Source: Cyanophora paradoxa CCMP329 (lineage: Eukaryota > Plantae > Glaucophyta). Taken from it: 64,000 nucleotides of DNA. The translations under genes and the position numbers were made by a program. The notes beneath the pieces were generated by a model. It worked only from the letters and a program-made list of their open reading frames with translations, was not told the origin of the DNA and made no database searches. The DNA is taken from the NCBI GenBank assembly GCA_004431415.1, contig QPMI01000103.1, positions 247,986 through 311,985 of the forward strand, written 5' to 3'. This document shows, piece by piece, positions 1,921-61,667 of the stretch (position 1 is the first letter of the stretch; each line of letters begins with the position of its first letter).

Positions 1921-4400
1921 CTAGATGGCGCGGGCGAACATGGCGTGGGGGGTGAGGCACTCGGAGGTGAAGGGGTTGCGGGAGGGGGCGACGGGCCCCG
2001 CCTCGGGATCCCACGCGAGGACGGGCACGGGGCTCGCCGTGCTCGGCGACCAGCTCCCCTCCGGCCCCGCCTCCCGATCCACGTCGACCTTCGGGGGCGC
2101 GCCGCAGAGCTTGGCCGCCCGCTCCCTGCAGCTGCACCGCATCGAGAGGCCCAGGCGCCCCAGCGGCGTCCGCGGCGGCTGCCCCTCCTCGCTGGGACTC
2201 GAGGCCGGCGGCGGCAGCGGCGTCGGCTCGGCGTCGGCGTCGGCGTCGGGGCTCGAGGCGCAGGGCGGGGAGTCGACGTCCCCGCGGGGGGAGATGTCGA
2301 TGACGCGCCCGTGGAGGGGCCCCACCGGTACCGCCGCCGCCGGGGGCGACGGCGACGGCCGCCGCGCGGGGCGCGGCCTCGAGGGGGGGATGGCGACCTG
2401 CGCGCCCCAACGTAAATCGATATCGAGCGCGCCCGCAAATCAAGATTCGAATTAATTTTCGCAGGATCGCGGGAGCCGCGAGCCGCTGGCCCAGTGGAGC
2501 CGAAACAATAGATCTGGATTGAAGCGTGCGCGGGGCCGCGGCTCGGGCTCGCCTGCTTGACGCCGGCGGAGAGGAAGACGTGGCCCCCGGGCGCGTTCTG
2601 CGCCTGCACATGCGTCGGCACCGGCGCCGGCAGCTCCGCCCCCGCCTCAAGGACCTGACGCGCAGAGCCGACTTCAGACGGAGACGAGGAAAATCGCAAA
2701 CGAATGGTTCGCGGATCGTGCCGACAAGGGGCCGGGGCGGGGGCGCACGGCAGCGTCTCCGATGTCAGTGAGGGTGCCCGTGCCGCGCGCCTCGTGCGCC
2801 TTGGCGCAACCGCGGAAGACGCAGCCGGGGGCCGCCCCCCGGGCGTTCGACTCGACCACGAGGCCGCACGCGTCGGCGCCGTCGACGAGGCACCGCTCGA
2901 ACGTCGCCTTGCCTGCGCATGCCGCCGCCGGTGTCGAAATTCGCGATTGCGGTCGACGTCAATCGCCCTAAGCTTATTTATAGTAGTTCTGCAATCGATC
3001 GCGAAGTTCGAACTGTAGATCTAGCTTCTTAGATCTAAAGCTAGCCATGGACGGCAGCGGACCGCCGATGCCGGCGACGGAGGCCCCGACGCTCGAATTC
3101 GCCATGCGGCAGTCCCTGCGCATGCGCCGGGCCGCCGCCGGCGCCGTAAGACCGCCGAGTGCAAGGGACGCGCGGTTGTTCAAGATCTAGAACCGTTGAA
3201 CCGCGCGCTCGAGCCGCGCGCCGCGCACGTCACTATGTAGGAGCCGTCGGGGTGCTCGAGGAGCATGGCGGGGGCGGGGCCGCAGTTCGCCACGGACGTC
3301 CGCATGATCCAGAGCTTGCTCCGGAGCCCGAGGGGCGCAGCCCAGATGCCGGGCCCCTTGCCGACGCCCTCCGCATCCGGATCCCGGTCCACGCTCACGT
3401 CCTTAACAAACCACTTCGCTCTGCGCGGCGTGGTCGCGCGCGCTGGGCGTCAGCAGCGCGCCAGCGCACGAGGCGGGCGTGAGATGGGGGTCGGCGCCGC
3501 GCGCGGCCGGTCGCATTGGCGAGCGCACCCCGCCACCTCGAACCGGATTCCGCTGACCAGGATATTCTGAATTAAACCCTTCCCTCCATTTCCGATGATG
3601 ACAATTGAAGCGGGGCTTGCTTTCTCACAGCTGCTTCTCAAAACTATTTGTACGCCCGGTCTGCACATGCATATGCACACGAGTTATGATTAGTGCGAAC
3701 TCATGATCAGAGCTCGAGCATCATGGCATGCGTATGCGTGTTCCTTAACTGGGGCACTAATCGCTCAGGACACGCACCCTGAACCGATAATGGCGAGATC
3801 TGACCGGACGCAGCACAGCATTAATCATGATCATGATCAGTTGCGAACTCGCAACATGTACATGGACCGCTTTACAACATGCACATGGATACACACCCCT
3901 GCTCGGTCCCCCCTCGACGTGGATGGGGCCCAGCTCTTCGTAGACGCCCGGCTCCAGGATAAGCGTCCCCGTGAAGTTCTGGGTGCAAACCATCAGATGG
4001 CGAAAAGTGGCCGGCAATGTTCCACTTGTAAGTGGGGGGGGAATCGGAGAGGGCGCACCATGTTCTTCAGCGCGGAGCTGATCGCCGAGGGCCCCGGCGA
4101 GCACGTTGCGCGCGGCTCGGGCAAATTTGGGAGGACGTTGACAACCGTACGTGTGCACGTGGCCGTGGGCTCCCTTATGCAGCTGGCAGACAATTGCGAG
4201 CTCAATTGCAAGCGCGCGTGATTGTGATCGTGACCAGCGCTGACGGTACTCAACGAGGTGCTCTCCATCGGGGCCTGCAGCTGCATGCGCAGCGTCATCG
4301 ACGGCTGCAGTTGCTGCTGCGAGTCGGCTGCCGACGAGGGCATGCCCTCCATGTCAATCTGCGTACAAATACGTACGTGTAGCGTTATATATGCGCACTG
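1921..4400 (-). CDS. Putative right-handed parallel beta-helix (pectin-lyase-like fold) protein, multi-exon; 5' end uncertain (may extend past 4700)
   Basis: Exon peptides TLILEPGVYEELGPIHVEG, DLAIIGS, SIVIIGNGGKGLIQNILVSGIRFEVAG and GKATFERCLVDGADACGLVVESNARGAAPGCVFRGC resemble beta-helix repeats (PGxY.E cap motif, 'C.F.GC' turns). Low-complexity C-terminus ends at stop 1921. Confidence 0.45.
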
Positions 4401-4732
4401 CGGCATGCTTCAGCCCCTGGCAGGGTCCAGAACCAGAACCAAACGGGTGCGGACGTTGAACGCTTTGCACATGCCGCGGCCCCCTGGAGGCTGGAACTAC
4501 CGGATCTAGAGATCTTACTACTAAGTTAATTTAAGCTTGCCGCATTGCGGCTTCTTCAATTCGCGTCGGATCGAGTCCACCGCGGGCCGCGGCCTGCTGC
4601 TTGACACGGGCACGCCGGGCACGCAGCTCTCAGCCGACTCGGCGAGTCTCCGGGAACGTTCCGATCGCGAAGTTCCCGAGTCCAGGCTGGAATATTCAAG
4701 GCTTATAATTAAAAGCTTCTGCAAAGATAGAC

Positions 4733-4925
4733 GTCCGGACTCCGGAGTCCGGAGTCCGGACTCCGGACGGGTTAACGTTAACGTTGACCGCCGAGTCCGG
4801 CCGGTGTCGGATCATCGACTCCGATGTCAATTGACATTGACATGTCAATGTCAGTTGAAATGTCATGTCAATGTCCACTCCGGGTCACCGGGTTGACATG
4901 TCGACGTCGACGTCCATTGACATTG
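4733..4925. repeat. Mixed-orientation short-unit cluster (TCCGGA[C/G], GTTAAC, TGACAT/ATGTCA)
   Basis: gtccggactccggagtccggagtccggactccggac, then gttaacgttaacgtt, then atgtcaattgacattgacatgtcaatgtca. A second TGACAT cluster lies at ~5548-5628. Confidence 0.75.
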
Positions 4926-5464
4926 GGGGGGATACCACTCCAAACAGGCTAAAACACCTGCAAATCATGTTTAAAACATGTACGTATACTGTAACTTAGT
5001 AAAACGAGAAATGTCCGGCAGCACTTCAGTTAATTTGGGACCGCATTACTTAAGTGCGCGCATTACTTAAGTGTTACACGGTATACGTAGGCCTGCAGGC
5101 TGCAGCTGCCGCACTGCGCGGCAGTGCCGCAGTACCGTAGTACACTGAGACTCTGAGAGTCACTACAGACTGTACATGTACAGTACAGACTGTACAGTGC
5201 GACTCGGCTGCGATGCACGATGATCGATGATGCCGATCGAGGCTCTGCGTATGCGCAGGCGTACGTTTCCGCCCGGCCGCGCCCGGCCGACTTACCAGCC
5301 TGAGTATTCATTGATAAACGGCACTGTCACAGTGTACTAGTAAGCAGCACTCTGCAAGCGTTAGCAGCACGTTTCTGATGTTAGGAAGGAGGCAGAGGGC
5401 AGCGGGGAGTCGGGGACTCGCCGGGGAGTCGCTGAGGACCTCGCCCAAGCTGCCCCGCCGCCTC

Positions 5465-5513
5465 ATGTTCCAAAAGTGAGCTCGAGGCGGCCTCGAGCTC
5501 ACTTTTGGAACAT
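5465..5513. repeat. Perfect 24-bp inverted repeat with 1-nt spacer
   Basis: atgttccaaaagtgagctcgaggc (5465-5488), g, gcctcgagctcacttttggaacat (5490-5513). Confidence 0.95.
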
Positions 5514-5688
5514 AATATCATAGTATAATAATATATAATATAATAATCAATGTCAGTTGACATGTCGGTTGACATGTCGATGTCCGATATCACTGTCCAC
5601 AGGGTAGACTGACATGTCAATTGACACGGCAACCCTAGGGCCGCCCCGTCGATCGCGATCGATACGACCAGGTACTGTAGGAATGCTT

Positions 5689-5856
5689 AAATTGCCGCGT
5701 AGCTATAGTTAAATTGCCGAATTCGATCAAAACCGGAATTGCCGAGGCGATAAATTGCCGAAACGTTAACTCTGGACTTCTTCTATGGCGCCATACAAAA
5801 GCGGCCGTTTAGCCCTACCCCCAGCTGCAGAGAATTGCCGCGGCTCTAAATTGCCG
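5689..5856 (+). repeat. Six dispersed direct copies of AATTGCCG
   Basis: Copies near 5690, 5712, 5737, 5753, 5833 and 5849. Confidence 0.85.
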
Positions 5857-7415
5857 AAAATTGGGCCCGCGGGGATGCCATGATGATATATATATCGATG
5901 GCAAGTTAACGTTTGTAACGGGAAAAAGTTTGTGACGGTGTGACGCCCGTCCGTGACGACGGAGCTTGAACACCAACTTGTCACCAGGTAGTGTACCCGG
6001 TACTAATAATAACTAGCGATCATCGGTCCTGACATCGGATACGTCACGGCGTACCGGTAGCCTTTTCATTCTTACAAGTTACATGTAACTTGATCATGAT
6101 ATATCGATGTTTACTAAGTTACATTGATGTATCATATATGCATAGTATGATTAGTATCATGTAAGTTGATGTAACATGTACTACGGTAAGTCGCCGACGA
6201 CTCGGCACTGAGTCGGCAGTGCCACGGTGAGTCGGCAGTAGGGCTGGGTTCATCTGCCGCCATGGCCACTGCTTGCTCATGCCATTCGCTGATTCGACCC
6301 GCAATTGACGACGCCGACTGATTCTATCGCACAGGCTGTTCGTGCACCCGACGTTGATGAAGTTCCACATGTACAAGATACCCGCGGCCGGGAGCTCCGT
6401 TCACGATCGCGCATTGACGTGTGCATCCCCTCCCCTCGCCGACCGTCGGACCCACCAGGGCTGACGCTTTCCGCGTCTCTGCAGCTGCAGGCTGCAGGCC
6501 TGCAGCTGGACACGGCGGGGAGCCTGCGCCGCGGCGCGCAGCCGAATCGACCTAAAAAGGATCTTCTGCCGTCTTACCGTAGTACCTCCAGAAAAATTAA
6601 ACAACGAAATTAAATCTGAACGAAACCGCCCGCGCTAACGAGGCTTATAATTACGGCGTCTGACACTGTGACACCTGGCGGGGGCTGAATTCCTTTCTCC
6701 AGTGTTCTTTGTTTGCATAATTACCCTCTACTGCCCGCGCACTGTGCTTGGCAACTTAGATGGATCGCGTCTGGGTCATTTCTGGGTCATTTTCCTCAGT
6801 TTTTGTTGCACGGTAGCCTGACTGAACCTTGGGTTGACGTCGACTGATTCAGTCACAGTCAGGGGGGCTGAGCGACTGGGTCAGCTGCAGGGGGGGACCC
6901 TGACTGAACCCAGCACTAGTCGGCAGTGCGCCGACTCGGCTAGGTCTAGGCTAGCTCAGCGGCTGCCAGGCTGGGCCGGCCGGGGGACGGGGCCTGGCCC
7001 GCCCGGGCCCTGGGGGCCCCTGGGCCCTGGGACCTGCAGCTGCTGGGTTGAAGTGGGTACACCGGTTATTCTGCCCTCGCGGGCCGCCGGAGGCGAGAAT
7101 AAGCGGTATAACGTTCATGTTCGGCCGGTCAACCGTGGCGCCGACATTAACTTGTTCACTTAAATTAAATACGATCATCGGATCCCTCACATGATCGTTG
7201 TTAGGAGGGGAGCTCGAGGCCCAGGGGTCAGAGCGAAGAATAGCAGATGAAGAGTAAGCGACAATACCTAACGCAACGAATGTTTGAGCGTACCGATCGA
7301 TATAGCTAGCGATACTAGGTAAGACTAGGAGGAAAGTTTCGGGGGCGGTCACTGGCTGGCCCCAAGCGCGCACAAGCGCAACATGCGCAGGCGAGCGCAG
7401 CGGGGCGGGGCGGGG

Positions 7416-17503: not shown

Positions 17504-17832
17504 GCCTCCTTAAACCTCGCTCTCTCTTCCTCCCTCCCGGAGCGAGCCGAGCCGCGAGGCCGGCTCCTGCGCCGCCCGCTGCGCGCCTGAGAGCCATCTG
17601 AGACCCCTCCCCCTCCCCTCGTACCCTTCTCGTACCCCGCCGCGCCCCCGTGCCTGCGCCGCCCTGCCGGTACCCCCCTCTTCCTCGTCATCCCCTTGCC
17701 CTCCTCTCCTCCCTGCCCTCTCCATTTTCTCTACCCTGCCCGGCAGCCCTCCGCCCGGCCCCCTCGCCCTTCGAGTTGGAACTGCTGCGCCCGGCCCGCG
17801 CACTCCTGTGGCGTGGCGTTGACTGGACGTCG

Positions 17833-17940
17833 AATGCACAAGCCTGTAAAATGCACAAGCCTGTAAAATGCGCACGGCTGTAAAATGCACAAGCCTGTAA
17901 AATGCACAAGCCTGTAAAATGCGCATGGCTGTAAAATGCA
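17833..17940. repeat. 17-bp minisatellite with a 51-bp higher-order period (a-a-b a-a-b')
   Basis: aatgcacaagcctgtaa x2, aatgcgcacggctgtaa, aatgcacaagcctgtaa x2, aatgcgcatggctgtaa. Confidence 0.9.
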
Positions 17941-18612
17941 TATATATATGGCTGCGACTGGTACGTAAACGATGACACGGAATTGAAAGAATGTGCTGTG
18001 CGTGTCTGCAAAAATACGCCGGCGGCGAGCACTGTGCTGTACGTATTCATGCAAAAAAACGATGACTGATTTTCAGGACTACTGGCCATGGGCTAGTCTA
18101 GTGGGCCATTTCAATGCAACTCGGAGAGGGCCGCGGAAACTTGAAAACCTAACCCCGTAGCTATCTATTGTAACAGTACCAGAAGCCGGCAGGGGCGGCC
18201 ACCGCCACCGCACAATTGCAAGAAAACCAAATCCGATCCAGTCTCTCACGTGCACACAGCCCACCAAGAAAACTCACATTGGCAATCGCCATCAATAAAG
18301 CCACCTCGAGCTCCAAAAACGGTTATATATACGTAATTATATAAAATGAACTTCGCGATCGCTTCTACAGATGTTCCTATGAGAGAAAACGACTAGCTTG
18401 CATTAAATTTGTCTACGGCATATAAAATAATCTATACAGCTTCGCCCGCCGCCTTTCAAAGCCTGTACATGTGGCGGCGATCCCCCTCTGATACAACGGC
18501 AAGTCCCGAGTGGTGAAGTGAACCCAGCCGCCGCCGAGTGATGAACCCAGCCGCCGCCGGGCCGGGGGAGATCCAGATGGCCATGGGGAGGGGCCGGGGG
18601 CCGGGCGGGCGC

Positions 18613-19059
18613 TCAGTCGCCCTTGAGGGTGGCGGGGGTGGCGGGGTAGGAGGCGGGGTAGCCGAGGGCGGGGCGCTCCCCGGGGGCCCCCGCGGGGCCC
18701 TGCACGAGGGCGGCCCCCGCGGCGGCCTGCTGGGGGCCCGGGCCCGAGGCGGCCAGGGCGAGGGCCTCCTGGTCGGCCTGCGGGAGGGCCCCGCCGCCAC
18801 GAACTGCACCTGCACGTCGTGCACCCTGCAGAGGCCGTGAGAGGGGCCGGGGAGAGGCCTGGGGGGGGACAGGGTCGACGCACGAGAACTTGCCGCGGAG
18901 GGAGCCGCCCTCGGCGGCGGCGGCGGCGGCGGCGCGGCGGAGGGAGCCGCCGACGACGGAGGCGAGCGCGGCGCCGTTGCGAAGCGAGCCGCCCAGCACC
19001 GCCGCGCTCGGCTGCCGGCCCCGGCCCCTCAAACCCCGTGCAGCGTCGACGTCGAGGGC

Positions 19060-19097
<38 letters not shown>

Positions 19098-22000
19098 GGG
19101 CGCACGGCGTCGGAGACGAACTCCTTGAGGGACATGCGGGTGGAGCCCTCCTTGGGGGCCGACACGGCCCCGCTCGTCCACCCCGTCGATCAGGTACGCG
19201 ATCTGAGGCCGCGTCACCGCGTCGGCGGCGGCTGGCCCGGGACGCGGGCGGGGCGGGGCGGGGAGGGGCCGGGGCGGGCGGGCCTCGCCGTGGGTGATGG
19301 AGTCGACCCCCTCGATCTCCTTGGTGGGGTCCACCCGCAGCCCGATCGTCTTCTTGATCGCCAGCAGCGTCACCTGCCGCCCGGCCCGGCCCGGCCCGGC
19401 CGCGCCCTCAAGATCAGCGGGGCCCGCGCGCGGCGGTGCGCATGCTCGACGGGAGGAGACAGCGAATTCGAAGGCGGCGGGGCGGGGCGCACGACGGCGA
19501 TGGAGATGGAGAGAGCGGCGACGACGAGGACGGCGAGCAGCTGCACCCCGAGGAGCCGCCCGTTCCCTGCCCGCCCCGCGCCACACCCCGCCTCAGGCCT
19601 CGGGCTCCGGGGGAAGCGATGGAGGGGGCGGCCGCGGGTGGGGACCGTAGAAAGCGCCGTCGGGGCCCAGCGGGTTCACTTTCTTCGTCGCGAAGAGGCC
19701 TGCGGGACACGGCCTCGGCGTCAGGCGCAGCGGCGAGGGCGGCGGCGGGGGCGGGGGCGGGCGCGTGCCGGTGCAGAGGGGCCCGACGACGCCGCCGACG
19801 CCGTGGCAGGAGAAGACGTCGAGGGTGTCGTCGATGAGGGTCAGCCGCTGCCGCAGCTTGATCGCGTAGAACGAGCACGCCGCCCCGATCTGCCCCGCCC
19901 CGCCCCGCCCAAGCGCTCAATCCCGAGAGGACCGGAGCCGGAGACGGTCGACTGGAGCTGGCATGGAGTGCTGCTCGCGATCGCGATCGGGGCGATTGCG
20001 GGCGCACGATGCCGATGAGGAAGGCGGCCCAGAGCTCGACGAAGCCCGAGTTGGGGGTCGAGACGATGAGGCCGACGACCTGCCGCGCCCCGGCGACCCC
20101 GGCTGAGCTGCGAGGGGCGGGGGAGAGGATCCGGAGTGTGTGGGAGGGCGGGGCGGGGAGGGCGCGCCATGCCGACGGAGGCCTGGGAGGCGGAGATCTT
20201 GCGGTCGTGGAGGTACTCGAGGGCCATCCACGTCGCCAGGCCCGTCGCCGCCGAGAGCTGCGTGTTCGCCACCGCCACCGCCGCCACGTCTGCCCGGCGC
20301 GGCGATCGCGAGGCCCAGCGTCGACGTCAGCGCGCGGGCTCTGAGGCCGCTCGGGTTTATTGGGCTCGCCGGGCACGGGCGGGCACCGTCGGAGAGGTAG
20401 CCGTTGCCGCCGTTGAAGCCGAACCAGCCGAACCAGAGGAGGCAGGCGCCGAGGACGATGAGGGAGACGTTGTGCGGCACCAGCGGCTTTTCGAACGCCT
20501 TGCGCCTGCACGCGCGCGCCCCCCCGCCGCCCCTCAAACCCTGAAACGAGACTGAAATTCTTCGAATTCGCCGCGGTGCGGCCCGCATTGAAGTGCCCCG
20601 CACCGCCCGATGATGACGGCGGAGGCAAGGGCAGCCATGCCGGCCTGCGCGGCCCGGCGGGAATCAAATATTAATTCCAGTGAAATTCGGAGGGGGCGGG
20701 GCGGGCGGGGCGTACGGTGAGGTGGACGACGAGGCCGCCGCCGAAGTCGACGACGCCGAGCTCACGGAGCCAGCCCTTCCAGGCGCACACCACCGAGGGG
20801 CCCTCCTTGGCGTATGCCACCCTGCACCCCGCCGCCGCCCACACCCAGTGCGCCACGATGTCTGCCCGCACCCGCCGTCGACGTCACTCGCCGGCGGCGA
20901 GCTGCGCGCTAGGAGCGGGCGGGGGCGCGGGGCTCGCCGTAGCAGAAGGTGCTCCAGAGAATGATGAAGGCGAGGTAGGCTGCGGGTGGATGGGGCGCGC
21001 GGTCAGGGGGCGCAGCGCAGGGCGGCCGGGCCGCGGGCAATCGCGGGGGCGGATCCCCGGACCGCGGAAGGACATGCGACCGACGACGGCGCCGGAAATG
21101 AGCGCCGGTGTGATGATCGCTGCGCGGCGCGACGGTCAACGTTGCGACTCGAAAAATGCACCGCAATCCCAGTGAACGATTTTGCACCGAACATCATCTG
21201 ATAGGTCATGAAGAGCGCGTGGGGGATCTGGGGGGGCGGTTAGCTGCAGCTGCAGCAGCAGGCCTGGGCCGCGGTCCCATGGCCAGCGGCCCGGCCCGGC
21301 GGGGCGGCACAGCGCGGGGCGGGGTGCTGGGCGGACGTTCTCTGCGTACTGCGGGCAGCAAAAAGAGTGAGGGCATCAACGAGAGCGGACCGGAGGGGCC
21401 GGTGCGGGGCGGGCGCACGTCGGGGTTGGACTCGCCGCCGACGTCCTTCAGGCCGCCCCAGCGCAGGTCCCCGTAGATGCGCGAGCCCCCGTCCGGCGCG
21501 TACGTCACGCTGTACCCGAACAGGAACCACTGGATCGTGATCGCCTGCGCCGGGAGGAGGGGAGGAGGGGCGGGGGGGGGGGGGGAGGGGGAGGGGGGGG
21601 GGGCGTTGTTCTGATTATTTAATGTCCTGCGATATCCAGCACGCGCACGCAGCGACCGCGAAGCTGGACGCGCACCGGGATCGCCACCACAGACATCCTG
21701 CGCGCGCGAGGGACCCGCAGATGTGATTAGAATTTGTATTATATAATCACGACGTCGACTCGGCGAGCTCGAGCTCGAGCTCGAGGCGCCCGCCCGCGGC
21801 AAATGGACGGGCGGGTCGCGATCGGCCGGGGCCGGTTGGGGCTCACATGAGCGTGTTGATGCTGTTGATGCTGTTCACGAAGCCTGGGAGCGGCCGCGCG
21901 CGTCACGCGGGGAGCGGCTTGAATGCGGGGGGCATGGGCGCGTGTACCCCCGTAGAAGAAGGCGAGGGCCTTCGAGTTCGAGGGGCGGGGCGGGGGCGGC

Positions 22001-25000
22001 GCCGGGGCCGGGGGCCGGGCCGGTCAGCGGCCTGGGGCGGCGGATCGATATCCCGCGCTGAGCTCGAGGCGCACCGGAGTCATCACAAAGACCTGCACGG
22101 GCCGGGGGAGGCGGCGAGCACGATCGCGAGGTCAGCGGGCCGGGCGTGCACGTGCCAGCCCCGTGGCGCCGGCCGGGTTGGCGGGCGGGGCCAGGCTCAC
22201 GAGGAGGGCGCAGAGCAGCATCCACGCTGTGTCGCCCGAAGCCACCGAGCAATTCCTCGATTTATGCTTGGCCTCACGTGCTTTTTCTTCGCCGAAAAGC
22301 TCGCATGAATTATATACAGATCACGAAGTATTGTTTCTCTACGTATACCTACTTCTATGACGTGATCTATTCTGCCACGCGTACGACGGCTACTGCCACT
22401 CGGCGGGCTAGTTTCTATTCTATTATTAATTCGCGACTATATTGCTGCGTGCATATATTGTGTTTGGCAGTCGCGGGGAGCACGGTTTTGCGGCGCAAAA
22501 CCGGAGAGAACCTTCCACCGTGTTGAGATCACGGTTTATCAGTTCTCTCAAGCCGAGGATACCGGCGGATGCTTCCCCAGGGGTCCACATCAAGTGCTTT
22601 TTTCTGACGAGCTACTGCGAGTCTACAATTGCTGTACCCCTCTGGGTTAGTGCCCGATTTCTTGAGGGGCATCTGGCCCAGGCCTCTCACGTGGTCGGCC
22701 GCAGCCTTCACGTGATTCGGAGGCGGGGTACAGCGACCGCTGGTAAGTACAGCGGTTTGAGACGGAGGCAGGAAATAGTTGGTGGGCCGGCGGGCTTCGC
22801 CCGCCGTGCACAAACCACACCACTCACGGACTGTCCTCGCCTCTTCAATATTAATGGAGTACAGCACAGGAAAGCAGTGCGGATCGAGCTTTGTCGGTCA
22901 TTCGACGAGCTTAACGCTTTCTCGATCTCTTAATTACGTAAGAGCCTGCTATTCTCCATGTGCAATTACAGGGCTTGAGGTCGACGTTATATGAAATTCG
23001 GATCTGGGCGTCTCCGCCGCCAGCTGCAGGCTTCTAGCCGCAGATCTAGATCCGGTAAGGCAAGCTAGTTCGACGTCGACTTGCCACTATTCCTTATTAT
23101 TCCTCTCGGGTTTGCAGTGCGATCGCTTTGGGCATCAATCGATGCCATCCTAGCGATTTCAATCGCGTCGATCGCAATCGCGGGGTTGATGCCCGCAAGC
23201 CATGTCGAATGTATCAGCCCGATTTCGATTTTTGTCTCGAGCTCTTCTCTGGTCGCGAGTCTTCCGTGGCCATATGCATTCTGCAGCCTGCGGCTTGCTT
23301 CGAATTCGCAGCTCACGGCTTATAATTGCGAAGGACTCGTGCGATTAATCCACCCGATCCAGCTCATGAATTATCTGAGCTTATAATTAAAGATCCGGAT
23401 CCGGATGCAGAGAATTACTCCGACAGCCGTGTTCAACGGCGGGGAGCTCAATCGCGAGGGCTGGACGTCGACATCGCGTGTTCGTGTATCCGGTTCGCGC
23501 CCTAGGCCTAGAGCTAGTCGGTGGCCATGGCACTACAGATTGGAGACTCCGGGTTCCGGTCTCCGTGTCGATTTTTAATTATAGGCCCGTATACGTAGGC
23601 GTTCTGCAGCGAAAGGCTGCAGGCTCCAGCTCGACTGCGAACCTCTTATGGCCAGGCTTAGGCCCCTGAGGGCTCCGAGCTCGACTGGGCATATGCATGA
23701 GCCTGGTTAAATATATATAGCCATTAATGGGCCCCGGTTCTCGAAACGTTAACTATTGCAAGTTAATTGCAATTGCAAGTCCAGCGCCGACAGCGCGACT
23801 TGTAATTTGACCCTGACATGGCAGGTCTGTCTCACGATCAGCTGCAGAGCTCGATTCTGCCAGCTGCAGTACACGTGAACGTATACTTCACTGTATACGA
23901 CGAGGTGTGGGAGGGTGGGTGCGCGAGGCGATTCCTCGCACAGATCGTAGTAAAAGATTGAAGAACAAGGCGCGCCGCCCGCGAGCGGGGCGGGCGGCGC
24001 GCCTCAGACGGACTGGCGCTCTCAGGAGCGCCTTGCGTCAGTGATGCAATCAATAGCAGGCGGTACCCGTGGCGGCGTGTCGGACGGGTACGTCTCGCGT
24101 TCATAATTAATATTTTGTTTTCTCGTGCGCGATCACGATCGCAGCCGAGCGCCGGCCGCGGCCGCGGTTACGATTCCGGGCGCGCGCCGATAGCTGAGCT
24201 TGTCGGCTGTTTTGCACTGACGGCTTGCACAAATCTTCGTCTACGCTTACGCGCATACGACGTTTTATGCTTGGCCTCACGTGCTTTTTCTTCGCCGAAA
24301 AGCTCGCATGAATTATATACAGATCACGAAGTATTGTTTCTCTACGTATACCTACTTCTATGACGTGATCTATTCTGCCACGCGTACGACGGCTACTGCC
24401 ACTCGGCGGGCTAGTTTCTATTCTATTATTAATTCGCGACTATATTGCTGCGTGCATATATTGTGTTTGGCAGTCGCGGGGAGCACGGTTTTGCGGCGCA
24501 AAACCGGAGAGAACCTTCCACCGTGCTGCGCCGGGGCCGGGGGCCGGGCCGGTCAGCGGCCTGGGGCGGCGGATCGATATCCCGCGCTGAGCTCGAGGCG
24601 CACCGGAGTCATCACAAAGACCTGCACGGGCCGGGGGAGGCGGCGAGCACGATCGCGAGGTCAGCGGGCCGGGCGTGCACGTGCCAGCCCCGTGGCGCCG
24701 GCCGGGTTGGCGGGCGGGGCCGGGCTCACGAGGAGGGCGCAGAGCAGCATCCACGCTGTGTCGCCCGAAGCCACCGAGCAATTCCTCGAGTAGAAGCCTG
24801 CCCCCGCCGGGCCCGCCCGGGCAGGGCCGTCACCCGTCAGAGGCAAGGGGCGCCGTCCGACGGTCGCGATCGCTGGGCGCGCGCGATATGCATGCGGCGC
24901 CGGCGCCGGCGCCGACGTCATGATCACCTCGCGCGCAGACGCAGGAGCCGTCCTCGTTCTTCAGGAAGCTCCCGTCCGCGCCCTTCTCCGTCCGCCCTTC

Positions 25001-25392
25001 ATGGCACTCCGCTGCGCGTGCGCCATGCATATGCTCATCCGTCATGATCAGCTCGAGCTCATGGTTTGCAAGGTTTGCAACATAGGTATCTGCGATATTT
25101 CGACCGTGCGGCAATATATTTAATAGCTATCCGGTCCGGCCCGGGGCCTCGTCGGAGGCTCGTCCGGCCGTGGTCCGGCCCGCAGCCCGCGATCGATATC
25201 GATCGACATCATGACCATGATCATCTTTAAATTTAGCTATAGCGATGGTGCCTATGCCGCGCACGTATACGCGCGCGCGTACGGATATATACTTCTAGCC
25301 TGCGATCGATCGCGAAGACAGATCTAGAGCAGCGCACCGGACACGCACAGGCCCGCGCCCAGAATCAAAGTGGCAACCAGTAACGCTCTCAT
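18613..25392 (-). CDS. AMT: Ammonium transporter (Amt/Mep family), about 20+ exons, interrupted by an insertion with duplication of exon 3 (partial) and exon 4
   Basis: Exons 25392-25338 (MRALLVATLILGAGLCVS), 25011-24928, 24797-24730 (SGDTAWMLLCALL), 24621-24604 (VFVMTP), 21969-21948 (ALAFFYG), then IQWFLFGYS, YQMMF, ITPALISGAVVGR, AHWVW, DFGGGLVVH, PHN, LLWFGWFGFNGG, DDTLDVFSCHGVGG, GLRV..EIEGVD..HGE. Twin His and Phe gate retained. Confidence 0.93.
21999..22260. repeat. Host duplication A, left copy (262 bp; AMT intron/exon sequence)
   Basis: Matches 24528-24789 except one visible substitution (22193 A vs 24722 G). Confidence 0.95.
22261..22522. repeat. Element-end duplication B, left copy (262 bp)
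   Basis: tttatgcttgg...ccttccaccgtg, apparently identical to 24264-24525. Confidence 0.95.
22814..24104 (-). pseudogene. Decayed KDZ (Kyakuja/Dileera)-like transposase remnant
   Basis: In order on the minus strand: RRHGYRLL..APES (24077-24018, cf. CxHG..GE/ES), PTLPHLVVYS (~23920-23890, cf. LP..xYD), DTFDMACGH (23215-23189, cf. DxFHxxxxH), LDPHCFPVLYSINIEEARTVREWCG (22888-22814, cf. NP..FP.L..NxxxAEQxNxWxG). Key residues substituted; matched by eye only. Confidence 0.4.
24264..24525. repeat. Element-end B, right copy (262 bp)
   Basis: Identical by eye to 22261-22522. Confidence 0.95.
24528..24789. repeat. Host duplication A, right copy (262 bp), continuous with the AMT 5' exons
   Basis: Continues directly into the exon-3 acceptor (ctg at 24798-24800). 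Confidence 0.95.
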
Positions 25393-25537
25393 TCTGCAGC
25401 TGCTTCGAATTCGAATTCGAGTTCCCCTTACGATGTCTCGTACGCGTGCGAATATATACGCCGGCGACGCTGTGGAGGCCGCTGTGGAGCGTACGTACGT
25501 ATACGTACAGGAGAAAGCTCGAGCTGTACTGCGGTAC

Positions 25538-25582
25538 AAGCAGGGGGGGCTCCGCCCCCCCCGCACCCCCCCCGCTTGCTAG
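25538..25582 (+). other. G7-CTCCG-C8-GCA-C8 hairpin followed by CTAG (Helitron-3'-end-like or REP-like)
   Basis: aagcagggggggctccgccccccccgcaccccccccgcttgctag. Confidence 0.35.
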
Positions 25583-26819
25583 CTGGCCAATCGGAATTGC
25601 TGGGTTTAATTGACCAATCACCAAGTCGCCCGAGTTTTAGACTGTAGCTTTTTGACTGGACTCGCCGTAGTAAGCGATTTCAACTCAACTGGGTATACTG
25701 GTACTTGAGCAAGTGTTCAAACTTGTATATATATCACCATGACCGGGTACACGAAAGCCCAATACTATGCAAGCTGGCAAAGCAGTGTTTTTTTCGACTG
25801 AATCTATCACTCAGACAATTACACCATTGGTGGGCAGTTTTGCTGGCAGGATTTTCCTTTTTTTTGCCTCTTCAAGCTCGCAGCTGCCGTAGTTCGGATG
25901 ATCCCAAATGTGTTCAGAACTTACCAGTGGCAGCCTCCGGCTTCCGAGTTTGAAATTCCCAGCCTGGGCCGGTAGTGAAGCGAAGAGCTAGTAATATAAA
26001 CTAGTTATACAGTTACATGAGGAGGTGCTGCCGCAGGAGGCGCCCGGACGGAACTGCCATCAGCGGAAAGGCGTGGCCGCGGACGCCGGAAAGAGGCGAG
26101 ATGGTGACGGCGAACGAAGCAATGCTGGCTATACTATGATAGGTAGCAGAACAAACTTTGTTCGCTCATTTCGAAATGATGACAAGCTCGGCAATTGCAA
26201 ATTCCAAAAACAAATTTGCAAATTCGCGATATTTCAATATCACGAATTGCAATATGTCGACGTCCCAAATTCAATATCGGCCTGCTATAAACATTCCTGC
26301 CCTTGGGGCAGTGCAGCCTCGGGTCACTGGGGTGGCGCCGGCTTGAAGGCTATAGAGCTAGCAGGCTATATAGCTAGCCGCTACAAAGCTGGCAGGCCAG
26401 CCGCACTGCGGCAGGCAGGCCTACCCTGGCGCAGCCATATAATTCTATAAACGATAGCTATTGCTGGCCAACAGGTTCGGCTCACCAAACCTTTGGAAGT
26501 TACCGGGTACATAAATTGATTGATCTTGGAAGAGCGATTGTTAAATAAGCAAACCGTTGCGATTGCGATTGATAATCAAGCATTGATAACCGGCGACAGA
26601 CAACATGACCGTGAAAAGAGAAGCCTCTTGGTCACCCACCGACCAGGTGACCCGAGGCTGACCGCCGTATACGTACCGCCGGCGGCGCCCCGGGCGGCCG
26701 GGCCGGGTACCCGGTCGGAGGTTGCAAAGTCAACCTTGCAATTTCATGCGCATATGTTGTATAATTATGTATACGTTTGCACATATCCATATGTTGTCTG
26801 CGCATGCGGGGTACCTCGA

Positions 26820-27790
26820 GCTCCGCCGCCGTGTTCGGCGCCGGCTGTCAGTACTTTGCTCGGTAGCTCCCCCGTCGTGGCTCCTCGGGGGCCTCTTCGT
26901 CGTCGTCGTTCGCTGGGTTCCGGCTCCGGGTCAGATTTCTCGCCGGGCTTACCTTCTCCTGGCTCTGCTCCTGCAGCTGGGCCCTCAGCTCCGGGACCGG
27001 CTTCCCCGATCTCCTCCCGGACTCGTGGTCGTACCCGTCGCCGGCTTGCCAAGCCTGCGGCTCCTTCTACTCCCCCCCGGCGGTTTGCCGGGCCGGACCC
27101 TCCGGCCTTTGTTCTTGATACCGGACTGCCGCCTTTGCCTTCGTCTTCTGCTTCGCTGGTCGCGATCGTATCCCGCCGGCGGCGGCGTACTTCTTCGTCT
27201 TCTAGTTTAGTTCGGTCTGGTTCGGATTCTGATCGTAGTGTTGATGCTAGAGTTAGTTTCAATACTAGCTATAGTCCTCGTGCTCGACCTGTTGTTCGCC
27301 GTCGTTTGCAGTTCGATATCGATTGCCCGCCTCGACCCCGGCCGGCTTTAGTGATTCCTTTGACTGTCCTTTTGCCTGCTCTTGATCCGCCTGCTCCGCC
27401 TCCTGTGTCCTCCTCGACCTCGTGCCGTAGCTCTGCCCTTTCGCATCGTCCTGCTTCGCCTCCGGGATCCGCCTCCATGTCGTCTTGTTGTTCCTCTTAC
27501 TTGTCTTCTTCCTGTTATTTATCTTTCTCAATTTTGTCCCCCGCTTCTTAGTGATATCGATGTAATTCCTTCTGATATTGATGGTATCTCTAGCTCTGGC
27601 TTTTCTTCGTGTCAGTTATCCTCTGTCCCTAGATCTGCTCGATTTATCGTCTCTTCTCGCTATCGATCTGTCTCGAGCTCTGTGTCTTTCGAATTCCTTT
27701 TTTATTGTCGATTTTGGCTCTTTGTCTTATCTTTCTTCGTGCTCTTGTCTTAGTTATTTTGCTTTTTTGTCTTTCTGCCCCCTGGGCAGC
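26820..27790 (+). mobile_element. Pyrimidine-skewed, intronless decayed ORF-like tract; probable retroelement/TE remnant
   Basis: Ser/Pro/Arg-rich ORF (26520-27551) with mostly NNT codons, unlike host GC3. Strong T/C strand skew, no introns, no recognisable domain. Confidence 0.35.
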
Positions 27791-27798
27791 CCCCGCAG

Positions 27799-27895
27799 TG
27801 CTGGTGTCGACGTCTAGAGACTGTGGCCGGTAATTCACCAAAACAAATATGCTGGTGTCTAGAGACTGTGGCCGGTAATTCACCAAAAAACAAAA
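27799..27895. repeat. 45-bp-period tandem duplication
   Basis: gtctagagactgtggccggtaattcaccaaaa at 27812 and 27857. Confidence 0.9.
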
Positions 27896-29079
27896 TGCAT
27901 ATTAAAACAATTACAGAATTTACAGTCTCCGCGGCAATTGAATCGGCAATGACTGCCAATGAGTCGACGTCGGCAATGAGTCAGTGACTCAGTGCCAATG
28001 ACTCGGCAATGAGTCGGCATGCGCGCGCGACGTTTCCTGGTTCAGAGGGCCGGGCCTGCATGCGCAGCTGGCGAGTGTTCCGAAGTTCCCAGTACCCCAC
28101 CGCGACCGGCGCGGCAGCGGCGCGCCGGCGGCGGCGCCGGCGGCGGCGCTTCCCGGGAATCAAGTGTTCCCGGCCCGCGGGCCTGGAAGATCTAGAACAC
28201 TAGTACTACATCTAACTGCCAGGGCTGCAGCCTGCAGGCCTATAGCGCCTACTAGGCTAGGCTGCAGCTGCGGCGCGGGTGATGCAGGGCAGGCTGCAGC
28301 CAGCGGGAGCCCGAACTTCGAAATAGCGCTCGGCGCCAGCGCCGCGCCGGCACAGCTGCAGGGCGCAAGCCTTGAAGAGGTCGTCGCGGCGGCGACGTGC
28401 GCGACTTAGGCGCCGCCTTGACGCGCCCGCATCATCAGCGATCTTAAGCTTGCATCATCGCCATCGATATATCGCGGCCTTCAAGCTTCTCAGCGGCTGA
28501 AAGCGCTAGCCGCTGTAGATGAGAAGGTGACAGCCAGGGACGCCAGCTGCAGCGCTAGCCCCGGTCCGGCCCATTGCGCGTGCAATTGCAACGGCGCGCG
28601 CACGGCCGCGGGCGCGCGGGCGGAGGCCTATAGAGCTCAGGCAGATTGCAATTGCAAGCTGCGGGCTGGAGCCGTTCGCAGTTCTAGCCCTATACGTGTC
28701 TAGAGCATCGCGCGCGAGCCGCCGCGCGCGGCCGCCGCCCCGGGCCGGGCCAGCGCCATTTTTCCATGGCCAGCTGCAGCTGCGACGCGTGCAGTGCATC
28801 TCGGTGACTAATACTGCTTCATCGTTTACGTCTGGGCGAGCCTGTGGCTGTGCCGTCCCACGGTCCGCTGCAGCTGGCGTACGCGTCGCGGCCGCGGGCA
28901 GGGTGGCTCCAGCGCGCGCGGTCGACCACGCATGCGCAGCTGAAGCATTCGGTGACATACAAGACCAGCGCCCAAGCTGAAAGGTTCGATCCGCTGTTTC
29001 GTCAACGATCGGTATTCATGCTTCGAAATTCTTAGCTGACCCGCTAGCGCTGCATGCGCATGCGCAGGTGACAAAAGCA

Positions 29080-55300: not shown

Positions 55301-58188
55301 CGCCCTCCGCGCCGCCCTCGCCCGCCTCGTGCCTTCTACTCCCCTTCCCCCCCCCCCCCCCCCCCCCCCCTGCCCTCCCCTCTGAGCGCCCTGGCGGCAG
55401 GCGGAGGGCCAGGCTGCGATCCGCGTGGAGATGGCCGAGGCCGCCGACGCCGCCGCCCGCGCCCGCGCCGACGCCGTCCGCCCTCCCTCGTCCCCGCCCC
55501 CGCCCCGCCCCGCTTAGGCCTCGCCGGCAGGAGGAGGGGAGGCGCGGGCGCGGGAGGCCGCCGTCAACGGCCTCCGCGCCGCCATCCTCGAGCAGGCGCC
55601 TCCCCCGCCCCTCCCTCCTCCCTGCCGCCCCCTCCTCCTCTCAGCGCCCCTGCAGGTGGAGGCGGAGGCGGAGGCGCGCGCTGCGGGCGGGGAGCGGCTG
55701 GCGGCGGAGGCGCGGCGGCTGGTGGAGGAGGAGGCGGGGGCGCGCCGCGCCGCCCTCGACGCCATCCAGGGCGACCTCCTACGCCTCGTCCGCCCCTCCC
55801 CTGCTTGCTCGCCGCTCCTCGGCTCTCCTCCTGACGGGGCGGGCCGGGGGCGCAGGGGGCGGCGCTGGCGGCGCTGCCACCGCCGACGGCGACCCCGCCC
55901 TCCTCGGCCCCCTCCTCGCCCCAGCGCGGCGCCCCGCACCACCACGAGGCCCGCAAGGCGCGCCCCCTCCGTCCCCTTTCCCCGCTCCCCCCCTCCCCGC
56001 GTGACCCTGTGCCCAGCCGGAGGACACGCGGGCGCGGCTCAAGGCCTGCGAGGCCCTCCTCAAGGCCCACTCCAGCGAGCTCGAGAGTGCGCCGTACCCC
56101 CGCCCGCCCGACCCCGTACCCCGCCTCCGTGACGCCCTGCCCGTCAGCGCACGAGTACCTCATCCGCGCCCAGGCCGCCCAGGTACCCCCCGCGGGTCCC
56201 TTGAACCCCCCGCCCCGCCCCCCCCCCCACCCCGGCCAAAACGCGTACCCCAGGTGGAGCACTGCGCGACGACGAAGGCGCTGGAGAACCTCCGCACCGC
56301 CACCGCCGAGCAGGTAGCCCCCCCCCCGCCTTGCTTCTGGGCGGTGTACCTTCTGCACCCACTCACCGCCCGGTCCCCCCCCGGCAGATGGCGGGTGTGA
56401 ACGCGCGGGCGCAAGCGGCGGAGGAGAGGGTACGGCAGCTCGCCTCCGGTACCGCCCCCGCTCCCGCCGCGTACCCGGTACCCCATCCCCGACGCTCGGC
56501 CGTACCCCAGCGGTGGTGGCGGACCAGGAGGGCATGCGCCGCTCTTTCGCAGAGTCCCTCGACGCCCTTCGGTGCGCCCGTACCCCGCCGGCCGGCACGG
56601 CGAGGCGGGGTACGCGAGAGAGGCTGACCGGGTCCGGCCGGGCCGGGCAGGTTCGACGTGGAGGGGGCCGTGGGGCGGCGGGGTGGCCCGCCCGCCGAGC
56701 CGGGGCCCGCCCCAGGATCCCGCTCGCCCCCTCCGGGCCAGGGCTTCGCCGCCCGCGCCGCCGGTGCCCGCGCCGGCCCGCCCCTCCCTGCCGCCGCCGC
56801 CCCCTCTGAGCTGGGCGCCGGCGGGCAGCGCCTGAGCGGGAGGGCGGGGGCGCGCTGTACACGTGCGGCCCGCTGGCGGCGACGCTGGCGGGGCTGCTCT
56901 CCCCCGAGCGGCAGGCCGCGCCGCCCCCCGCGAGCGCCAACGCGAGCCCTCGCCGCGGGGCCTCCGCCCCAGCACCTCCGTCTCTGCCCCGCGCCCCGTC
57001 TCCCTTCCATCCGCCCCGGCGCCCCCGGCCCCGGCCCTGGACCCGCCTCCGTCAACCCGTACTCCGCCCACGTCGCCCCTCCCCCGTCCCCGACCTCCTC
57101 CCCTCGTCCCCGCCGCGCCCTCCTCCCCCCGGGGCCGGCGGCGGCCCCGGCGGGGTGCCCTCCTCGGCGGCAGCGGCGGCGGCCCTCTCGCCCTTTGCGG
57201 AGCGCCACAGTGCGCCGGGCCGGCCGGCCCCGCCCCGGCCCCGCCCCGCCCTGCTCTGACGGGGCCGGCCGGGGGCGCAGCGACGGCGCTCGCGGCGCTG
57301 CACGCGGCCGTGGAGACGCTCGACGCCTACGTCCGCTACGCGCCCCACGAGCAGGCCCGCCCCTTGCTCCAGCCCGCCGCTCTGCCCCTCCGCCCCAGCC
57401 GCCCAACGCGCCCCCGCAGGCGGCGCGGGCGCCCTCGGGTCCCGTCTCTTCTGTCGCCACTGCCCTCTGCTCCTCCCTCCAGGCCCGCCCCCTCCCGCTC
57501 CTTCCCCTTCTCGTTCCCTGACGCGCCCGTACCCCAGGCGGTGGTGACGGAGGGGGTGCGCGCCGGCGTCCTCCTGCGCCCCACGCAGCACCCCTGGGAG
57601 TTCCTCGAGGCCCTCGTCATCCGTACCCCCCCGCGCCCTCGAATTGCGTCCCCGCCCGAGCCGCGCGCCCAGGGGAGCCCGGCTCGGCGATGGCGGAGGC
57701 GGTGGGGTACATCAACCGGACGGCGCCCCCGCCGCAGAGGTGCGCGGCGAGGCGCTGCCGCCGGCCACGGGCGGGGCCGACGGGGCGGGGCGGGGCAGCG
57801 CGGAGGACGAGGCGGCCCTGTCCGACGCCAAGTTCGCCGCCTTCGTCCGCGCCGCCCTCAAGTGCGCCCCGCCCCGCCCCCCCGCGAGACCTTTCCCGCC
57901 TGAGGCGCCGGGCGGCGCGCAGCAAGCGGGCGCTGCGCGAGTGGCTCGGCGCCCTCGCCGCCTACATGGTCGACCGCGCCCACAAGCGCGGCGCCGACGG
58001 CGGGTGCGCCCCCGCCCCGCCCCCCTCGAGCTAGACTGCCGCCTGACTCGGGGGGCAGGGCGACGCCGCGCGCCGGCTTCGTGCAGGAGCTGCTGGAGGC
58101 CGTCGGGCCCCTCGCCGCCCTCGACTTCGCGTACCCCGTCGAGGCCGCCGCCGGGGCCCCCGCCCCCGCCCCGGGGCCCGCCCCTTGA
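52323..58188 (+). CDS. Long coiled-coil protein with a C-terminal RUN-like domain, multi-exon
   Basis: Heptad exons throughout. C-terminus AVVTEGVR..HPWEFLE, AKFAAFVRAALN/KRALREWLGAL, ELLEAVGPLAALDF follows the RUN block order. TGA at 58186-58188. Confidence 0.7.
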
Positions 58189-60729: not shown

Positions 60730-61667
60730 CGCCCCGCAGCCGGCCCCGCGTGCCGAGCGCGTGAGGCCGGGGGCCTCGGAGAGGGGGCCGGAAATTTGGC
60801 AGGAGAGGGGGGCTCGTCGGAAGGGCCCGGGCACGTCACGTAGGTCTAGACATAATCCCGAATACCTGTTGTGCCAAGTTTTGCAAAAACTGCGACGTCC
60901 ACTTTCGCGAAAACAACAACATGAACGTTAACCCTAAAAATGCATCGATATATATCCCCGACCCTGCCGGCCCCGACTTGTGGGCGGTCGATACCATCGG
61001 ATCCGGATTTCGATCGCGATATATGAAGGACCCGCGCGCGCGTGACGTTGACTGGCTACGTTCGCTATAAATTTTGAATTCAGAATTTAACACACGTGCA
61101 CGGCCATGGCAACTGCAATATCGCGATCGATATCGACTAGTACTGCGATTGCAATTGGCCATGGGCTCGCAACATATGGTGGCCACGTCCCTGCAGCTGC
61201 CTGCACATGAATATCTGACCCCACGTCCCTGCGCATAAGCGATCGCGAAATGCTGAATATCGATACTATGATATGTCGCATTTTTTGCATTAGCCGTTAG
61301 GCTAGTATACGTACAGCATGCGCATTTATCTACTTCAATCCTTCCGATCCCAGAACCCCGTACTATACCGAATTCGAAAGGGCAAAACTCGAGAAACGCG
61401 GGCGCAAAGAAAGTTCAAATATAGAAAATATAGATATCGATCTGCGTCTACTTTTGCACGACGATGCAAAGCTTAGTAGCTTACTACTACTGAAAATTAC
61501 GTACAGTACGCATGAAACGAAAACCACGGCAAATATGAATTACAACCGCTGTGCTGGTCTAAAGTTGCTGCTACTGCTGAAAACTAGCGATACAGACACT
61601 GCGAGCGCCCAAGAGAACTGCACAAGAGAAAGCGTGCTGCACAGTGTCAGAGAGGTGGCCGCGCGAG

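Follow-up and report, generated by a model that had tools for sequence, protein, structure and literature searches.

The non-autonomous Helitron2 elements of Chlamydomonas described by Bao and Jurka are mostly truncated at their 5' ends and keep intact 3' ends, a pattern called 'one-ended transposition', and their target duplications vary in length, mostly between 7 and 19 bp with some of 44, 50, 93, 242 and 443 bp (PMC3627910). Helitron circles in which the two ends are joined have also been recorded, as have head-to-tail junctions and truncated copies in tandem (PMC5148889; PMC5876387), and one-ended transposition of the bacterial element IS91 is cited in the Chlamydomonas work (PMC3627910). 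Here we describe a locus of the glaucophyte Cyanophora paradoxa CCMP329, in a 64,000-nt stretch of contig QPMI01000103.1 (the window, whose numbering we use throughout), in which a palindrome marks where a non-coding unit of 2,003 bp is joined, tail to head, to itself. We tentatively read this locus as the origin and terminus region of a non-autonomous, Helitron2-like rolling-circle element of the HUH type, inserted by one-ended transposition into an ammonium-transporter (AMT) gene.

Repeat finding and blastn resolved the locus into the order L-A1-B1-X-B2-(ct)-A2-R, in which two direct repeats of about 265 nt, A and B, are nested (Table 1). B and X together make up the 2,003-bp unit (start-to-start spacing 2003; copies 99-100% identical), and the insert B-X-B amounts to 1.13 units, that is, one unit plus 262-265 bp. 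A preliminary description of this DNA had proposed one full circle plus 262 nt, which agrees with both the spacing and the length of the B redundancy. B2 closes with the same ending as B1, ...GGAGAGAACCTTCCACCGTG (24506-24525), after which come ct and host DNA. On the right the insert stops at 24525, the final G of the inner left palindrome arm ACCGTG, and this base coincides with the fixed end of the unit, which reads ...CCACCGTG; the earlier claim that the ACCGTG end of the internal junction also meets host DNA on the right was thus borne out. The left end of the insert, 22261, is ragged and falls at an arbitrary internal point of the unit. Flanking the insert is a target duplication, A, of 262-265 bp taken from the 5' part of the ammonium-transporter gene. 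Because the B copies are identical and the A copies differ at one base, the B-X-B insertion points to one young event. A GGGGC run (21982-22000) ends exactly where the duplicated target begins.

Direct reading of positions 21800-25000 gave the palindrome as GAGAGAAC-5-ACCGTG-ttgagat-CACGGT-6-GTTCTCTC at 22504-22549, with the exact head-to-tail joint of the unit at 22522/22523. The abutted inverted ends across 7 nt and the third CACGGT at 22481 lie exactly where the preliminary description had placed them, and the neighboring hairpin 1 is present as well, with a stem of 9 bp rather than the 10 bp claimed for it. Hairpin 1 stops 19 nt short of the fixed end of the unit, and its second copy lies at 24486-24506. 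With the right end of the insert at ACCGTG and the left end internal, we read the palindrome as the point where tail met head in a donor that was circular or tandem, and where copying started or stopped; the need for such a donor had been recognized before and still holds.

The palindrome also folds well. As single-stranded DNA the 46-mer forms a two-helix hairpin of -10 kcal/mol (z = -3.9) that none of 200 shuffles equaled, and just 0.46% of GC-matched 46-mers from the window fold equally well. Folding the palindrome together with hairpin 1 as a 75-mer gave z = -6.4. The outer arm GTTCTCTC is able to pair alternatively with GAGAGAAC near the unit tail, which is reminiscent of the switch between terminal hairpin and asymmetric terminal inverted repeat (ATIR) proposed for Helitron2 (PMC3627910). 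In the center of the palindrome, TTGAGA is complementary to TCTCAA at 22546-22551 and can form a stem of 6 bp, but a weak one (-2.8 kcal/mol, z -2.3). TTGAGAT had been interpreted as captured donor flank, and this pairing is no less compatible with element sequence than with a random flank. A direct repeat, CACGGTTT, flanks the joint at 22481-22489 and 22530-22538, 49 nt apart; one of its copies is the 5' arm of hairpin 1, and the arrangement looks like iterons.

Table 1. Features of the insertion locus, its palindromic joint and the adjoining AMT exons (window coordinates).
Feature	Positions	Strand	Remarks
A1, left target copy	21996-22260		99% identical to 24525-24789; strict identity from 21999; single internal mismatch at 22193
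B1, final 262 nt of unit (terminal redundancy)	22261-22522	+	22261-22525 versus 24264-24528, 99.6%; identical save for fuzzy edges
X, other 1,741 nt of unit	22523-24263	+	non-coding; 55% GC; X-revcomp(X)-X scars
B2, second copy of the final 262 nt of unit	24264-24525	+	last base is the G of ACCGTG
ct at insert/host joint	24526-24527		filler, or gcTg versus gcGg as 1-nt microhomology plus one mismatch
A2, right target copy	24528-24789		continuous with R; holds micro-exon 2 (24604-24621) and the usable 3' portion of AMT exon 1
Third CACGGT	22481-22486
Hairpin 1, CGGTTTTGC-ggc-GCAAAACCG	22483-22503	+	9-bp stem, 3-nt loop; -8.7 kcal/mol
Imperfect palindrome	22504-22549	+	outer helix 8 bp, inner helix 6 bp, 7-nt center; spans the head-to-tail joint of the unit
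Outer left arm, GAGAGAAC	22504-22511
Left gap, cttcc	22512-22516
Inner left arm, ACCGTG	22517-22522
Center, ttgagat	22523-22529
Inner right arm, CACGGT	22530-22535
Right gap, ttatca	22536-22541
Outer right arm, GTTCTCTC	22542-22549
Inferred AMT exon 1	24730-24921	-	ATG at 24921; ...GAGFY/SRNCSVASGDTAWMLLCALL; donor GTGAGC; GC content at third codon positions (GC3) 0.82; in frame across A2/R
18-nt micro-exon VFVMTP	24604-24621	-	in A2
Copy of the VFVMTP micro-exon (decoy)	22075-22092	-	in A1, from the duplication
ALAFFYGG piece	21947-21969	-

A one-ended rolling-circle insertion would produce this layout in a few steps. A nick beside the hairpin would be followed by copying around a circular donor, past the origin and on to a stop at a variable point, so that the unit would have been copied for 1.13 turns off a circular or tandem donor. 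Copying would have begun or ended exactly after ACCGTG, 19 nt past the stable hairpin, leaving the opposite end ragged, and the product would have integrated in the 5' part of the ammonium-transporter gene between two target copies of 262-265 bp. The circular donor, a rolling-circle enzyme and any mobility of the unit are what we infer here. Such a process accounts directly for more than one unit lying head to tail and for one fixed and one arbitrary end, and the long target duplication is accounted for because duplications of Chlamydomonas Helitron2 reach 242 and 443 bp (PMC3627910). The two adjoining hairpins at the fixed end, with their combined z of -6.4, are in keeping with this reading. 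Helitron2-type elements begin with T and have a 5' hairpin that includes the terminal nucleotides; the first base of the unit would be T (TTGAGAT) if the joint is precise, and the possible 5' stem is the weak TTGAGA/TCTCAA one.

We compared the locus with the described rolling-circle systems. The host is an algal nuclear genome, as in Chlamydomonas, and the features shared with Helitron2 there are a non-autonomous element, an intact end by a hairpin opposite a truncated end (fixed end 24525 and ragged end 22261 here), a target duplication of hundreds of bp (262-265 here; 242 and 443 there) and occasional extra nucleotides at joints. Unlike the Chlamydomonas copies, the copy here exceeds one unit and thus includes the joined ends. 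This comparison is drawn from one locus, known in a single copy within the window, and membership in a family with RepHel elements would be a supposition. Helraiser (PMC5876387, PMC4778049) and Fusarium FoHeli (PMC5148889) likewise have a tail-head joint that implies a circle or rolling-circle concatemer, and a hairpin near the tail, but the canonical Helitron ends (5'-TC, CTRR-3', A^T target) are absent here. Helitron insertion normally proceeds without a target duplication, in contrast to the 262-265 bp at this locus. The resemblance to IS91 lies in a fixed start of copying, a run past the origin and a variable stop; IS91, however, is bacterial, carries its own HUH transposase, uses a specific tetranucleotide target and makes no target duplication. 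Mendiola et al. in 1994 reportedly found IS91 copying from one fixed end, past the origin and to a variable stop, with inserts longer than one unit as the result.

The preliminary description had favored a junction of a transposon circle of the insertion sequence (IS) families IS3 and IS256, with an HUH-type hairpin origin as its alternative; the first of these is not supported, and the second fits the data better. Two inverted ends facing each other over a few bp are indeed what IS3/IS256 circle junctions look like. Those elements are bacterial, however, with a DDE transposase, long and good inverted repeats and short fixed target duplications, whereas this locus lies in a eukaryotic nuclear genome (a spliced AMT gene), has no open reading frame matched to a family, ends at an arbitrary internal point and is flanked by 262-265 bp of duplicated target. 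In the IS mechanism the abutted ends are also opened and consumed at integration and are not retained in the insert, whereas the joint here is kept. A copy-out-paste-in IS circle leaves the excess over one unit, the pairing of a fixed with an arbitrary end, and the long duplication unexplained.

The host gene establishes which part of the locus was inserted. The only database relative of a local exon is the EukProt model tig00000405_g494.t1 (P0001; no contig is recorded for it), an ammonium transporter (PF00909, E 2.6e-80) that starts at MSVVAIPAITIQW and lacks profile positions 1-36 of PF00909 as well as about 45 N-terminal residues of solved Amt chains. Three minus-strand pieces near the insert (Table 1) encode the first helix that P0001 lacks. 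Viewed as separate exons, these pieces presumably correspond to the N-terminal Amt motif D-x-A-W...L-V-x-x-M-x-P-G-x-A-x-F-Y-x-G. The A/R boundary lies inside exon 1, with the conserved GDTAW codons in A and in frame. Upstream of GDTAW an in-frame ATG (24921) exists only in the A2/R context; in the A1/B1 context the frame runs into a stop without an ATG. This identifies L-A-R as the native order, B-X-B as the insert and A as the target duplication, and it leads us to reject an original order of L-A-B-X-R into which a permuted copy of 530 bp was inserted at X/R.

Read on the minus strand, A1 comprises part of AMT intron 2, the copy of micro-exon 2, intron 1 and the 3'-terminal 60 nt of exon 1. 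Owing to the duplication, exon 1 and the micro-exon are still intact on the right-hand side of the insert, so that the insert is in effect intron sequence. This intron-like insert may be why a gene predictor lost the 5' exons. The AMT gene may still work by splicing over 2.5 kb, or its transcript may take in the decoy micro-exon. The open reading frame of exon 1 had no match among 1.84 billion representatives and none in PDB, and the open reading frames that cross the insert/host joints, together with one AMT exon, are not recorded as genes in the databases. Directly downstream of the AMT gene region, at 17816-17951, lies a tandem array of about eight copies of a 17-nt unit (AATGCACAAGCCTGTAA).

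The unit itself has no detectable coding capacity. The longest open reading frame in the insert is 163 aa, none of 10 open reading frames matched a Pfam family above noise, KDZ families included, and the one spanning the joint had no homologues; we therefore discarded the idea of X as a coding region or KDZ fossil, which finds no Pfam support. Searches of the unit for tRNAs, ribozymes (hammerhead included) and other Rfam families returned nothing at gathering or relaxed thresholds, except for one sub-threshold, hairpin-like RNA match at the palindrome that we take as chance. Within the window, blastn at word size 9 and scans with three end motifs at up to 3 mismatches recovered only the two known copies. 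Exact 20-29-mers found no copy in JGI metagenome contigs or IMG/VR, and a 19-mer core matched twice in 596 Gb of bacterial contigs (bacterial and archaeal genomes), about the number expected by chance and with unrelated flanks.

In composition the unit resembles its surroundings. Nonamers of the form X-revcomp(X)-X, where X stands for any triplet, occur 27 times in the 2,003 bp against 0.56 expected, 25 of them in the X segment, and this scar density is that of the other low-GC stretches and of ordinary spacer. Composition and scar load mark the unit as resident nuclear spacer rather than recently acquired foreign DNA. Across the window, low-GC stretches (for example 1001-1500, 4000-7000, 25000-28000 and 61001-61500) contain palindromic hexamers at 3-6 times expectation and X-revcomp(X)-X nonamers at about 35-50 times expectation, or about 12-13 per kb, whereas GC-rich coding stretches are near expectation. 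Homopolymer C/G runs, the longest of about 45 nt, are scattered through the window together with (GGGGC)n arrays, at 633-706, 19057-19095, 21559-21603, 55341-55383 and 62780-62805.

Hairpins are common in the unit: perfect stems of 6 bp or more, with loops of 3-9 nt, occur at 17 loci. The last bases of the 5' arms of such hairpins occupy 28 of the 2,003 unit positions, compared with about 4 expected. The chance that a random insert end coincides with such a base is thus 28/2003 = 1.4%, and an end would come within 2 nt of one in about 5% of cases. As terminal inverted repeats the palindrome arms are weak, with 6 + 8 nt separated by unequal gaps, and a comparison of 250 x 250 nt inside the putative ends revealed inverted similarity no greater than that of shuffles (score 16, null mean 16.8). 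Elsewhere in the unit, at 23968-24004, a perfect 15-bp GC-rich palindrome, AGGCGCGCCGCCCGC-7 nt-GCGGGCGGCGCGCCT, forms the hairpin of highest stability in the insert.

Several of these results weigh against a Helitron2-like element. A single copy is known, with no other in the window, and the ends of the unit are therefore putative, as is its mobility. The unit could simply be spacer DNA from elsewhere, because its scar density equals that of ordinary spacer. The meeting of an insert end with a palindrome arm is suggestive and not decisive, with p ~0.01-0.05, because hairpins are a frequent background in this DNA. The target differs from that of Helitron2, with no T-rich tetranucleotide, TTTT or T-T site; instead ...GGGGCGG precedes the target and ctgcgcc follows 24525. 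The order of parts differs too, running here from hairpin to arms (GAGAGAAC, ACCGTG) to end, whereas in Helitron2 the ATIR, about 20-30 nt from the 3' end, is followed by the hairpin and then the end (PMC3627910). Finally, the 2-nt filler at 24526-24527 looks like end joining and not like a joint made by a transposase.

The same observations can be assembled into an account that needs no mobile element. A 2-kb piece of non-mobile nuclear spacer, present as an extrachromosomal circle or tandem array, would have entered a replication site that had broken or stalled, copied in through template switching or end joining, with breakpoints at the hairpin and the G-rich run and with the 265-bp duplication arising from fill-in of a long staggered break. 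We regard this as somewhat unlikely. It agrees with the palindrome-rich composition and scar density that the unit shares with other low-GC stretches, with the lack of coding or ribozyme signal, with joints that show either ct as filler or microhomology of 1-2 nt, and with a target copy that starts at the edge of the GGGGC run and a B copy that ends at the hairpin. Against these stand the need for copying to go round more than once on a circle lacking any dedicated replication function, an end placed exactly on the last base of a helix arm (p ~0.014), and a double hairpin at the fixed end that looks organized. The inverted arms lying exactly at the joint and the right insert end at exactly ACCGTG could instead be the short ends CACGGT...ACCGTG of a cut-and-paste element, of which a circle or tandem dimer with a 7-nt flank was captured by illegitimate recombination after more than one turn; this would be the circle idea of the preliminary description extended to eukaryotes. 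That origin is unlikely: the arms measure just 6 + 8 nt with unequal, mismatched gaps, subterminal inverted similarity is missing, no short target duplication surrounds 22530-24525 (flanks gat and ctg), and no transposase remnant appeared in Pfam, KDZ included. Moreover, circles of such elements are dead-end by-products whose capture alone yields no terminal redundancy, and TTGAGA pairs with TCTCAA in the unit, as a random flank would about 1% of the time.

Two further explanations appear less probable again. The nested direct repeats might stem from mis-joined long reads, and the contig name is of the type given by long-read assemblers; yet each joint is clean and unique, one base distinguishes the two A copies, and the structure is consistent with a single insertion plus target duplication, which makes an assembly artifact very unlikely. 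Typical long-read artifacts are inverted repeats, not nested direct ones. A combination of one fixed and one ragged end with a target duplication of variable length is a hallmark of target-primed reverse transcription, so that a LINE-like (long interspersed nuclear element) or Penelope-like process could have inserted a cDNA made from circular or read-through RNA of the unit. Such a cDNA would have a fixed 3' end, be truncated at its 5' end and partly tandem, as is typical for Penelope-like elements, and its target duplication would be unusually long. This origin strikes us as highly improbable, given that neither end has poly-A or a simple repeat, that no reverse transcriptase remnant was detected, that no hammerhead or other ribozyme emerged even at relaxed thresholds and that an RNA longer than one unit is required.

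Other element classes fit the locus poorly. CACTA or KDZ-type elements (3-bp duplications for CACTA, 8-bp for Zisupton) would suit the CACGGT/ACCGTG motifs, but there is no short duplication, subterminal similarity or transposase. Elements of the long terminal repeat (LTR) type (TRIM/LARD) have direct terminal repeats with TG...CA ends, a primer-binding site, a polypurine tract and a 4-6-bp target duplication; here B starts with tttatgc and ends with ccaccgtg, no polypurine tract precedes B2 and the duplication is 262-265 bp, and we reject the LTR reading of B. Retrozymes also carry a hammerhead ribozyme in the repeat, and no ribozyme was found at gathering or relaxed thresholds.

Our leaning, held loosely, is that the locus behaves like a one-ended rolling-circle insertion, and we do not file it as a proven member of Helitron2. 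The fuller description, a non-autonomous rolling-circle element of a glaucophyte in an insertion longer than one unit, with joined ends and between target copies of 262-265 bp, is possible but doubtful. For this lineage we found no published report of one-ended rolling-circle insertions that carry a long target duplication.

For the host, the locus shows how an insertion of 2.5 kb in a coding exon is tolerable, with the duplicated target restoring exon 1. If the unit is ordinary spacer from a circle, the locus would document reintegration of an extrachromosomal circle in a glaucophyte, which is of more modest interest. If one-ended rolling-circle transposition is the right explanation, the locus would be a natural snapshot of the Helitron-type process running past its origin on a circular donor and integrating either at a replication fork or at nicks separated by hundreds of bases. 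A rolling-circle element would here combine a tail-to-head joint, a fixed start or stop beside hairpins and a very long target duplication in one young insertion. Such a combination would speak to the initiation, termination and integration of Helitron-type elements and to a question open since 2013, why some algal insertions have target duplications several hundred bases long, as first seen in Chlamydomonas.

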